Shown here piece by piece: positions 21,906 through 38,965 of a DNA stretch of 64,000 nt. Position 1 is the first letter of the stretch. Each line of letters opens with the position of its first letter. The translations under genes were made by a program, and so were the position numbers. The notes beneath the pieces were generated by a model, which was not told the origin of the DNA, did no database searches, and saw only the letters and a list, made by a program, of their open reading frames with translations. Source of the DNA: Magallana gigas (lineage: Eukaryota); assembly GCF_963853765.1 (NCBI RefSeq), contig NC_088859.1, positions 930,001 to 994,000 on the forward strand, written 5' to 3'.

Positions 21906-24900
21906 AAGCATAGGGTCTTATCTCAATATGAGTCTGGTTTAAATAGCATATTCTCTATACTAAAAATGATGTGGATAAACCCTTAATATTAAAAATTCAC
22001 CATTTCATAAGAGCCAGAGAGAGAAAGACAGACAGACAAACAGACAGGCAGGCAGGCAGACAGACAGAGATACTATTTTAAAAGACTCTTGTGTTATGAA
22101 AATGGTTCAACATGGTTGATGTAAAGGATTTTTCTTTTTCTTTAAAGCATAACAGTACATTGTTATTCTAGTTTTGAATGGCGGAGCTTGACTATTGACG
22201 GAGTACACATCAGTGTTCCCAAGTCTATTCGACATTTCATTCATATGGCCCAGGAGTCTAAGTTCCTGGAGTGTGACCAGGACCGCGCCCAGCTCTTCTA
22301 TACCCAACACCCCAGGGACAACTCAGAGGAGGCTCAGCGGTTCACGAGGAAGGCGCGGCAGCTGCTGGTCAAAGGGAAGGAGGTGTTGGACGCCCTGGGG
22401 GTCAGGTTCTGGCTCAGCAGTGGCACCTGTCTTGGTATGTCAGTTGTACCTGTCTAGGTATGTCAGTTGTACCTGTCTAGGTATGTCAGTTGTACCTGTC
22501 TAGGTATGTCAGTTGTACCTGTCTAGGTATGTCATTGTACCTGTCTAGGTATGTCAGTTGTACCTGTCTAGGTATGTCATTGTACCTGTCTAGGTATGTC
22601 AGTTGTACCTGTCTAGGTATGTCAGTTGTACCTGTCTAGGTATGTCAGTTGTACCTGTCTAGGTATGTCAGTTGTACCTGTCTAGGTATGTCAGTTGTAC
22701 CTGTCTAGGTATGTCAGTTGTACCTGTCTAGGTATGTCATTGTACCTGTCTAGGTATGTCAGTTGTACCTGTCTAGGTATGTCAGTTGTACCTGTCTAGG
22801 TATGTCAGTTGTACCTGTCTAGGTATGTCATTGTATCTGTCATTGTCTTTGCCTTCTTCTATCATAGCAAGGGTCTGTTGAGCCAACCATAGGTCATTGT
22901 GATCTCGTTTTAGAATTTAAGGACTATACATACTCAACGTGTACCAGGATGATATCTTACATACCATAAAGGTCTTGCTAAAACCTATTTCTTTGGAGTA
23001 AGGTAAGTCAGGGAAACTCTGATGATGACCGACCCCTTTGGAATTCCATGGCTTTTCATTGTCACATTGTTTCAGCAACAAATCTTGAAAGCCTGTTGCT
23101 TTGAATATCAACACATAGATTTGTGCTTGCAGTTCAGGAAGTTTGAGATTGTCTTTTTTTAATGTTTACCCTGACTCTGTATTTCATCAACTATTGAGAT
23201 AATGTGTTATGCAACATGTTCAACCTCTTTCCTTCTTTTTATGAGTACAGGTATCTCTTTTGTTTTGATTTTAAAGTACTTTTTGTTGAGGTTTGACTGT
23301 TGTAATTTCTTTTTCAGGTTGGTTTAGACAATGTGATATCATAACATACTCCAAAGACGTTGACTTTGGGATCTGGATTAAAGACCACAAGCCAGAAATT
23401 ATTGATGCCATGGAACAAGCTGGTCTGCCCCTAAAGCATGTGTTTGGCAAAGTATGTAAATCTACAAGATACACTAGAGAGGCATTAATTTGGATTTACA
23501 GAAAAATCCCGCTGTTCCTATTGTAAAGTGTTCCCAGTTTAAATCAGTATATCTTTCTAATAAACAATTATATCGAAATATAAACAGCTAAAACCTACTA
23601 CCAAAACATTCAAAATATTATATTTTCATGAGTTTATATTAAAAGAGGAGTTTTAGGAGGCAGTTGGCTACCCATCGTCCGAGATTTCGCCGATGTTTTA
23701 TAGCTGGCCAATATATTTTCTATATATTAATCTTGTTTTCCGATTTTTTGTTTAATAAATGTCTAAAACCTATGCACACTTTTCATTAAAACAATATACT
23801 TTTGATTTAAGATCATTATCTCAGTTCACTTAAATGTAATTCTCAAAGTAAGGTTTTTCCCGTACCATATTTCAACAGCAAAACACGCAAATGGTGGAGT
23901 TGCCAATCTCTGTTATTTATGTCTCTGGTCTCAACAACAAAACTTTGACTTTTCCTGTCAGAGAGACATTAAGATTTGTCGACTTCAGTTATTTGAGCGA
24001 ATTTGATAAAAAAATTGACACATTTGATATCCTGAAGTAACCAGAAATTGTCACATGTTAGCATTGAGATTAAATAATGATCCAATATTTATTTTTTTAA
24101 ATCATAAATTCTTATTTTGTATTTATGGGATAAATATTTTTAAAAAACTGTATCTTTCTGCATCTATTTTTCAATTTGATGAAATTGGTCTGAGATTCTA
24201 GTACATTTGTATCGCACTTTGTTGTCTTTAGCATTGCTTTTGTTTTGTTTGTATTATACTTAACAAAGCATTGATGTTGTTTTCTTTAAATTCATTTCTT
24301 TTGTGTCTTTTAGGTGTCAGACAGTTATGAGTTGTCATTCAAAGCGGGGGAAGTAAAACTAGACATTTTCTTTTTCTACGAGGAGGGAAATACCATGTGG
24401 AATGGAGGAACTGATGCTAAAACAGGGGAAAAACTCAAGTATGTATCAAATGATGCTTAAACGAGGGAAAAACTCAAGTATGTATCAAATGTTGCTAAAT
24501 TTTTATTGTACAATATACAATGTACAATATGCACACAGACTGTCAGATACTAAAACAGGAGAAAAACTCAATCATGTACAAATGTTCCAAGAACTTTTTT
24601 TATTGCATTTACATGTACAATTTACAATGTATAATAGGCACACACAGTATAGGTGCTAAGATGCACAAAAATAGGAATGATTGTGCAAAACACAACATAA
24701 TCAAGTATGATATTAAAAAAAAAAACAAATACAAATTATTTATGCAAACATGGACATACAAGTACATGTAACAGGGATATCATAGATATAGTTTGAGCAT
24801 GTATTGATCGATACATGAAAGGTACAAATGCCTAACAAAGTACAAAAAATCATTTAATTACTCATTGATAATTAAAAACTTGGTTGTACTGCACATTTGT

Positions 24901-36942: not shown

Positions 36943-38965
36943 TTACTGAACCATATCCTGTATCCTACTCTGTGTAGCACTTTGTATGTTGTGCACTGGA
37001 TACTGTGTGAGTGACTGTTGGTATGAGTATAAAGCAGCCTGGAGGTTCCCTGTGATCTGTTGACAGATCCCCAGAATCTCCCAGGAGATGTCTCTGAATA
37101 AATCACGTACATACAGTCCCTGATCATCGTGGACTAGGACCTGAAGTGCATCTAGAGCTGCTTGTGATAACGGTGTATCAACATGTCTGTAACACAAGAA
37201 CTCTAGGAAGTGTAACATTACAAACAATGGGATATCTAATGAAGGCCACTTGTTCTGTAGAGAAGACTGTTGTTCTGGTATTAGTTCGCTGATATAACAG
37301 ATTCTATTGTCTAGTATAATATCCATTGCTACAGTTTGTCTCATCTTTTTAGACCAGGACTGTCCCCCCACAGCCTCAATATACTTTTCTCTGTCTACAT
37401 GCCTATCATACATTAGATATGGCTCTGCTAACTTGACCTTTGTTATCTCTAAAACAGATAAAGCTTCCCTGTATCTGAATGTCTTGTAATAATAAATGAC
37501 AATGTACAACATGTCAGAAACACATCCAAACTTGGCTGATAATTTAAGAATATAAGAGGAAGTTTTGTCTGCAATATACATCTGTTTGTTGAACTTGATG
37601 CCAGCGTTAGTGTATGTATTGTGTAATATAAATGCAGTGTTCTGAAAAATAGTTGTTGTATGTCTTTTTAATTTAAAGATTTGATAGCTTCCCAGGGGTG
37701 ATGCTACCAACTGTTGTATTGTAAATAAGTATTTCACACAGCTGTGAAGATTTCCCGGGGGTGTGTTACCATTATGAAATACCTCAGTGAAAAGTTCTAT
37801 ATCAATGTCCACTTCAGATTTGATTATACCTTCATATATATGAATAGAGGCTCTAGGATTGTAAAAGACATCAATGATGTAGGACCTGACAGAGGAACTC
37901 TGTAGCAGACAGATCAGACCTTTATTGTACAATTCATGTAACTGTAGAAACAATCTGTGTTGTGCTGAGCTATGAACCTTGGTCAGAAACATGTTGTTCT
38001 GTGGGATGAAAAAATTCGGACAAATCCCTTCATACACCCATTTAAGGAGGAGTTTAAAGGAGACCCAGAAACTGATCAGAAGATTTTGTGGACACCAGTG
38101 ATTTAGTGTATTTTGTTGAATCGCCCAAAAAACCGTTGTCTTCATGTGATAGGAACACAGCAGTTTATTGGTTTCGTCTAACTGCTGATTTATAACTTCT
38201 TTTAAAAACAATTTTAACAGACCATAAATCAAAAACTGACAATGATTCATTGCATACACACATTTGTACTCTGCATTGGAAAAAGAAATTCTCCATTCCG
38301 TGTCGCTATGAGGTCCTAATGGGTTTCCTATTGCTACAACATGACATCCATTTCTGACTATGTCATCAACAACTTCAGGATCAGGCCATGAGTGACACCT
38401 GTCTATCCATGACAAGGCAGACACAGGCCAAAAATCACAAATAAAACAGTGGGCATTGTCATATTCTACTGTTCCTGCTAAACTACCACTACCACAGGGT
38501 CCATGTACAGTAGAATTGGGCATTTTTGCAGAACAAGTCAATTCTCTGTATTTAGAACTAGATATATAGACTCTGTCATTCATTCTGACACATGCTGATG
38601 CAATGTCTCTGTCTGTTGTCAGTGTCAGTAACTGAAGTAAAGTGAATCCTGGTGGACTCTCAGAACTGTTGGAGAGAATCAAGGTTGTATTGGCTGTGTT
38701 GTAATATTCAGACTGAGACACGTCCATGATCACTCGGTGGTTGTTTGGCCAGTACATAAAGTCCACATCTGATCCGTTAAGTCTAAATCCTTCTCTCTGA
38801 CTTCCACTTAACATCTGAATGACCCCATTATTACTGGTCAGTCGTCTCACCACTACCTCCCTGATATCCACTGTCTCCCTCCTGATTGCTACCTGTTGTG
38901 AGGTCCCAACTATCTGACACATCCTCACAAACACTGCCTCTGACAGGTGCTGCAAACCATCACAT
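36943..38965 (-). CDS. cGAS-like receptor (cGLR), copy 2, about 660-675 aa
   Basis: Uninterrupted ORF with SGSQREGFRLNGSDVDF, EYD, EWRISFSNAE, SYHMKT and CPNFFIPQNNMF, collinear with copy 1. It has the same acceptor position (38966/38965). The ORF-track start is a TTG; the first in-frame ATG is at 38922. Confidence 0.88.

Follow-up and report, generated by a model that had tools for sequence, protein, structure and literature searches.

Fukutin 3′-end duplicates carrying antisense cGAS-like receptor genes in the oyster Magallana gigas

A stretch of 64,000 nucleotides of Magallana (Crassostrea) gigas chromosome DNA (C7:930001–994000), hereafter the window, contains the gene for fukutin (FKTN) and, directly downstream of it, two partial duplicates of the fukutin 3′ end. 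In both duplicates, the copied intron 7 contains, about 50 bp from its start, an antisense Mab21/cGLR-TPR gene, a member of the cGAS-like receptor (cGLR) genes. We refer to the 3′ end of the functional gene as copy A and to the duplicates as units B and C; positions are those of the window unless a chromosome is given. This arrangement is an authentic segmental duplication of considerable age that is specific to the Magallana (gigas/angulata) lineage. The copies are adjacent to each other, lie in the same orientation, are colinear inside, and are absent from the outgroups, and these features identify a tandem segmental duplication. Self-comparison and translation placed all the main elements of the three copies where an earlier reading of the sequence (the original prediction) had put them. 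The DNA identity among the copies of the fukutin segment was 74–84%. In the whole genome, exon 7 was found in only three copies (A, B, and C), and exon 8 with its 3′ untranslated region (3′UTR) in only two (A and B).

In copy A, exon 7 (24314–24445, + strand; 100% to XP_011418259.3) and exon 8 (27174–27392 plus the stop codon, to 27395, + strand; 97% to XP_011418259.3) are separated by the functional intron 7 of 2.7 kb (24446–27173, + strand), which was characterized by tblastn, repeat searches, and Tandem Repeats Finder (TRF) and contains dispersed repeats at 25789–25996 and 26391–26883. Exon 8 is followed by the 3′UTR and a downstream stretch common to unit B by homology (27396–28449, + strand). 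The spacer between A and B is filled by a dispersed repeat of 1 kb (28605–29624), which has 85–86% matches on other chromosomes and abuts the left edge of unit B.

The left part of unit B (29616–30283, + strand) consists of exon 7′ (29641–29768), which has lost one codon but kept the reading frame, a splice-site minisatellite with a 39-bp unit repeated about 13 times, as detected by TRF (29738–30235), and the first 45 bp or so of intron 7, recognized by alignment (30238–30283). On the other side of the cGLR pseudogene, the right part of unit B (32591–34495, + strand) contains the 3′ part of intron 7, homologous to A (32591–32655 and 32760–32848), an insertion resembling a short interspersed element that was found by repeat search (32856–33217), exon 8′ (33415–33633), in which two in-frame stops are present and the original stop codon is lost, and the homologous 3′UTR′ (to 34495). 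The 3′UTR homology pairs 27550–28449 in A with 33627–34495 in B at 74–79% identity. The fukutin part of unit C (35560–36005, + strand) comprises a tail of intron 6 (35560–35828; at least 380 bp, by homology), exon 7″ (35829–35967), which has one frameshift and one stop, and roughly the first 45 bp of intron 7. Neither exon 8″ nor 3′UTR″ was detected upstream of gene C in 38956–49600. The start of intron 7 in A (24485–24537) aligned with 35960–36003 in C and with 30238–30283 in B. The intron 7 homology given in the original prediction is correct for A and B, in which 26088–26152 corresponds to 32591–32655 (83%), but its pairing of the regions around 24650 and 36010 was imprecise.

The corresponding locus of C. 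angulata was retrieved via the ortholog of gene C. It was colinear with 27.8–49.0 kb of the window at 96–97% identity and contained exon 7′, the pseudogene, exon 8′, exon 7″, and gene C. In two outgroup oysters, C. virginica and Saccostrea echinata, intron 7 was 0.69–0.74 kb, and no Mab21 homolog was present in fukutin or within 10 kb on either side. A tblastn search of copy A intron 7 with cGLR proteins (E ≤ 10) yielded no remnant, in agreement with the original prediction, which had seen no cGLR there. Since copy A has no remnant and the intron of the outgroups is about 0.7 kb with no Mab21 nearby, a cGLR was probably never present in the functional intron 7.

Exon 7 of A, B, and C carries common Magallana-derived states, which argues for duplication after the split from C. 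virginica. The synonymous or neutral divergence was about 0.03–0.036 between M. gigas and C. angulata and about 0.25–0.33 among the units, with similar values between gene C and its paralogs, and about 0.8–1.07 between the fukutin genes of M. gigas and C. virginica. Judging from these values, the events would post-date the C. virginica split and have about ten times the age of the gigas/angulata split. Dating by divergence is unreliable at this locus because exon 8′ seems to be younger than the sequences around it. Exon 8 (27174–27395) and exon 8′ (33415–33633) were 95–97% identical with a synonymous divergence (dS) of 0.09, whereas the flanking intron and 3′UTR sequences were 70–83% identical, and the boundaries were sharp. 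This pattern, which had escaped the original prediction, suggests that gene conversion confined to the exon has taken place between exon 8 of the working gene and exon 8′.

Gene C (XP_011418331.3, 681 aa; 35980–41006, − strand) is intact, as supported by its open reading frame (ORF), Pfam matches, and an RNA splice joint. The main exon (36943–38965, from the protein model) contains an ORF of 670 codons (36943–38955) found by ORF search. Intron 1, a GT..AG intron of 2,018 bp placed by RNA contigs (38966–40983), separates it from the coding part of exon 1 in the RefSeq model (40984–41006). The splice joint 38965/40984 was present in RNA-derived contigs of two runs. The original prediction had ended the gene at 38965 and missed its continuation to exon 1. 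Coverage by an RNA contig indicated a probable 3′UTR at about 35980–36942. The start of the copied intron 7 reads TTTATT at 35976–35981, equivalent to AATAAA when read in the direction of gene C, and this hexamer lies near the point where the RNA-contig coverage of the 3′UTR ends (about 35980; one low-depth contig). The fukutin fragment may be the supplier of a candidate poly(A) signal for gene C.

The reading frame of gene C is open in both M. gigas and C. angulata. Its ratio of nonsynonymous to synonymous divergence (dN/dS) was 0.42 between the two species and 0.41–0.48 against paralogs; the dN/dS of the cGLR-TPR family was 0.5–0.7. Gene C is kept by moderate purifying selection. The proposal in the original prediction that selection acted on the passenger is supported by these values, by the intact state of gene C in both species, and by its splicing, as both pseudogene B and the fukutin pieces are broken. 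Pseudogene B (30339–32132, − strand) covers only codons 64–670 or so; exon 1, intron 1, the first 63 codons or so, and the GS motif are missing. The remaining part has eight frameshifting indels and five premature stops, most of them common to C. angulata, and still gave a Mab-21_C match.

The assignment of these genes to the cGLRs was examined in gene C and its relatives. Gene C matched the Pfam families Mab-21 with 31.6 bits and Mab-21_C with 44 bits (cut-off, 24.1 for each). A profile of the family searched against PDB sequences matched cGLR1 (8gjy) at 2e-13, MB21D2 (7lt1) at 1.4e-12, and cGAS at 5e-8. Among 24 family members, G62, S63, D74, and D76 were invariant and D177 was at least 90% conserved, and all five residues are present in gene C and in its intact paralog Z (described below). 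In the profile search, D177 aligned with the Asp of SVDLTL in 8gjy, which we take to be catalytic, as in cGAS. With a Mab21/cGAS nucleotidyltransferase core, a helical lobe, and the active-site residues at the level of motifs, the label cGLR is reasonable for these genes at the sequence level, and gene C most likely encodes a cGAS-like sensor enzyme. An AlphaFold2 model of its product, based on the 24-sequence family alignment, had a mean pLDDT of 41 and a pTM of 0.28 and was too poor for a fold search.

A second intact cGLR-TPR gene, paralog Z (XP model P0005, 683 aa; 3849–6015, − strand), is separated from fukutin by the EamA gene and is absent from the original prediction. It has an ORF of 669 codons and consists of a main exon (3849–5877), an intron (5878–5992), and the coding part of exon 1 (5993–6015), and its nucleotide identity to gene C was 83.5%. 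The regions containing or preceding exon 1 were homologous among paralogs: 5943–6118 in Z and 41038–41102 in C matched several other loci, and the stretch upstream of gene C (− strand), homologous to the exon 1/promoter region of the family, matched 6042–6098 in Z and two further family loci (L009 and L023). An origin of C and Z as processed retrogenes was rejected, as both have a 5′ exon and an intron. Because the exon 1/promoter region is homologous to those of the paralogs and the intron is present, the cGLR copies are DNA-level duplicates that carry their promoters and not products of retroposition.

The original prediction had proposed that a cGLR entered a duplicated fukutin 3′ segment and that the block was duplicated again. 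We infer a similar order of events and a single origin of units B and C, and we consider it reasonably probable that duplication was followed by one insertion into the spare intron and then by re-duplication. In the first step, the terminal segment of fukutin, beginning in the tail of intron 6 and including the whole 3′UTR, would have been copied in tandem just downstream. A complete cGLR-TPR DNA copy, comprising promoter, exon 1, main exon, and 3′ flank and donated by a family of hundreds of paralogs, would then have lodged in antisense orientation about 50 bp into the spare intron 7. In the third step, a block consisting of the intron 6 tail, exon 7, the start of intron 7, and the cGLR would have been duplicated again. 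The functional fukutin gene (copy A) would never have been interrupted. The fukutin pseudo-exons would subsequently have decayed, with exon 8′ later homogenized against exon 8 by gene conversion, and the cGLR of unit B would have lost its 5′ end and died, with that of unit C being retained.

This order of events is suggested by the features common to the two units. In B and C, the antisense cGLR directly follows the same fukutin piece in the same order, and both units lose homology to A within about 10 bp of one spot (A, about 24537; B, about 30283; C, about 36003). Because the order, orientation, and intron breakpoint are common to B and C, a single insertion followed by block duplication is favored. 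The p-distance between B and C was similar for exon 7 (0.22) and for the cGLR (0.23). In both maximum-likelihood trees, B and C were sisters, with an SH-aLRT support of 87 in a quick tree of 71 rows and 74/80 in a more careful tree that included the angulata orthologs.

Several results weigh against a single origin of the two units. In the tree, the stem of B+C was 0.009, compared with branches of 0.15 and 0.21, and long-branch attraction is possible. In the approximately unbiased (AU) test, the alternatives C+Z (p-AU, 0.38) and B+Z (p-AU, 0.19) were not rejected, and the cGLR family resembles a near star radiation. The raw identity of C was 83–84% to Z and other paralogs versus 76% to B. The exon 7 site patterns, rooted by C. 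virginica and Saccostrea, were tied, with two for B+C, two for A+B, and none for A+C. For the sequences bordering the junction at its cGLR end (56 bp in B; the 930-bp 3′UTR in C), homology did not exceed that of control sequence, and a 28-bp motif in the flank of B was also seen in the 3′ flanks of other paralogs and is missing from that of C. The extents of the units also differ, the intron 6 tail being present in C and not in B and exon 8′ with the 3′UTR in B and not in C, so that extra deletions or a partial duplication would be needed. Finally, copy A has 1.25 kb of private sequence where B has the cGLR; a transposon origin of this sequence was considered, and only a 210-bp repeat was identified in it. 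The proposal of insertion and re-duplication is favored by order, orientation, and breakpoint, but the sisterhood of B and C, expected in the original prediction, is recovered in the best trees with weak support, the exon 7 patterns are tied, and the extents differ.

An alternative that we regard as a minor but real possibility is that segments of fukutin and of a cGLR were interleaved by one complex, replication-based rearrangement with template switching near the splice-site minisatellite, or that two different cGLR paralogs inserted independently into separate pieces of fukutin. With a near-star tree, B and C need not be sisters, and the higher identity of C to Z than to B, together with the differing left and right extents, is compatible with such an origin. 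The breakpoint, moreover, lies beside an unstable minisatellite: the 39-bp unit is present in about 2 copies in A, about 13 in B, and 1 in C, and the cGLR junction is about 50 bp beyond this splice-site repeat. However, two independent insertions that share an orientation and fall within the same few bases in two copies of one intron are very unlikely, and the best tree still joins B and C.

It is also conceivable, though unlikely, that the cGLR first entered the functional intron 7, that the whole block of exon 7, cGLR, exon 8, and 3′UTR was then duplicated, and that copy A later lost its cGLR. The unexplained private sequence of A is located exactly between the intron anchors that flank the cGLR in B, and exon triplets of another host gene have been co-amplified with cGLRs elsewhere on the chromosome (C7:5.03–5.14 Mb), both of which count in its favor. 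The empty tblastn result for copy A intron 7 and the short, empty intron 7 of the two outgroup oysters speak against it, and more events would be needed, since A must have deleted its cGLR cleanly and C must have lost exon 8. An assembly artefact in the form of a haplotig or false duplication, in favor of which no point was found, has a negligible probability, since the copies are 16–26% apart, far above allelic divergence, and the stretch was recovered in DNA runs of several studies; it is refuted by the C. angulata genome, which was assembled independently and likewise carries the cassette of units B and C.

The claim in the original prediction that the locus provides a concrete mechanism for cGLR expansion was not established: the process is tandem segmental duplication of the ordinary kind, in an immune gene family already known to be massively expanded. 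As regards the presence/absence variation also proposed there, the stretch was found in M. gigas as well as in C. angulata, and in DNA runs of more than one study. A comparable arrangement was found at C7:5031700–5139742, where six POMGNT1-like GNT-I exon triplets (Pfam positions 208–335) are interleaved with seven cGLR paralogs. The paralogs in this array are spaced 17–20 kb apart, and the array is 4.1 Mb from the fukutin locus. Cassettes of a cGLR with host exons thus recur, with these two on one chromosome. Fukutin and the POMGNT1-like enzyme both act in the O-mannose glycosylation of alpha-dystroglycan; for now, we take this common pathway of the host genes as a coincidence. Since both host enzymes belong to dystroglycan glycosylation, a non-random association is possible, and a broader scheme can be drawn in which cGLRs repeatedly lodge in or beside host introns and amplify as host-exon cassettes, splice-site minisatellites serve as hotspots of breakage or template switching, the association with fukutin and POMGNT1 is non-random, and gene conversion feeds variants into the host genes. 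As a whole, this scheme is very doubtful.

The fukutin fragments serve as built-in markers, which show that at least some members of the cGLR-TPR family have spread as DNA blocks of a few kilobases and not as retrocopies. The locus is thus a dated, checkable example of the growth of this family, in which, after duplication, one receptor copy was kept under selection and its twin and the host-gene passengers decayed. Tandem segmental duplication is already accepted for the expansion of bivalve immune families, and the locus illustrates this view rather than changing it.

More than 200 cGLRs have been described in C. virginica by Li et al. (2023; PMC9980059), who counted MB21D2/C3orf59 as a cGLR and listed a cGLR-TPR architecture. 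The genes described here resemble that radiation in their Mab-21 Pfam matches, in the GS motif, D-x-D, and third Asp, and in their hundreds of copies. They also resemble the MB21D2/C3orf59-like and cGLR-TPR types, with database names of the form 'C3orf59-like' and a helical, TPR-like C-terminal half. That paper describes neither the fukutin/cGLR locus nor a route of spreading. As in the tandem segmental duplication of bivalve C1qDC genes (PMC6835236), local blocks in the same orientation have expanded an immune family and some copies have become pseudogenes. Unlike in the C1qDC case, the oyster block carries exons of an unrelated housekeeping gene, which mark the boundaries of the block and are partly homogenized by gene conversion. 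The fukutin fragments likewise resemble other partial duplicates found beside a parent gene, being truncated, non-functional 3′ copies directly downstream of the parent with exon-limited gene conversion; unlike ordinary partial duplicates, they contain an antisense gene from another family, nested within them and under selection.

In the M. gigas genome, the cGLR-TPR family comprises hundreds of copies, represented by 499 first-look candidates, a size that the original prediction did not give. Sixty-six of these candidates were scored, and all 66 were near full length with 68–76% amino-acid identity; they are distributed over five chromosomes, often in arrays. At least 11 members are located among conserved single-copy genes in the first megabase of the chromosome that carries fukutin (C7:364632–1023353). 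The nearest further member lies at C7 1021353 on the + strand, 27 kb past the end of the window. Three identical cGLR ORFs, 20.6 kb apart, were found at C6:1883498–1926673 (L028–L030) and represent either a very recent tandem duplication or an assembly duplication.

The surroundings of the cGLR genes in the window contain several repeats. A very abundant element resembling a miniature inverted-repeat transposable element (MITE) is located just upstream of exon 1 of gene C. Palindromic repeats of about 800 bp, 87% alike, are present upstream of Z (7421–8207) and of C (43825–44662, also 41135–41696). They were considered as a part of the family unit and rejected, since the flanks of 29 other family loci lack them. 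With regard to capture by a transposon (Pack-MITE/Helitron-like), no shared terminal element was found, although no dedicated transposon annotation was made.

The coding region of fukutin, a ribitol-5-phosphate transferase, extends over 18916–27395 on the + strand, as indicated by tblastn, transcript variants, and synteny with C. virginica. The protein XP_011418259.3 (437 aa) matched seven + strand blocks in the window by tblastn; besides exons 7 and 8, these were 18916–19011, 20662–20850, 21248–21514, 22164–22436, and 23317–23484. A short exon coding for residues 33–42 was not recovered in this search. The identity of the gene as FKTN is supported by an FKTN_N Pfam match and by conserved synteny, and all transcript-derived fukutin variants terminate in the exons of copy A. 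The gene order EamA-FKTN-FAM76-ASF1 is common to the window and C. virginica. By comparison with the C. virginica locus, EamA/TPT was located at 12.2–18.6 kb (− strand), FAM76 at 49.6–50.0 kb (− strand), and ASF1 at 50.3–53.5 kb (+ strand). The gap from FKTN to FAM76 is 22 kb in the window, compared with 4.2 kb in C. virginica.

Minisatellites in fukutin are composed of the last bases of an exon and the 5′ splice site. They were found at 20842–20969 (three copies of 41 bp), 22418–22841 (18.6 copies of 23 bp), and 24412–24499 (2.3 copies of 39 bp). In exon 7, residue 350 is Asn in the reference and in the pseudo-exons 7′ and 7″, and Asp in all five of the transcript-derived variants compared and in both outgroup oysters. 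Asn350 could be a polymorphism donated by a pseudo-exon via gene conversion, or it could reflect a divergent reference haplotype.

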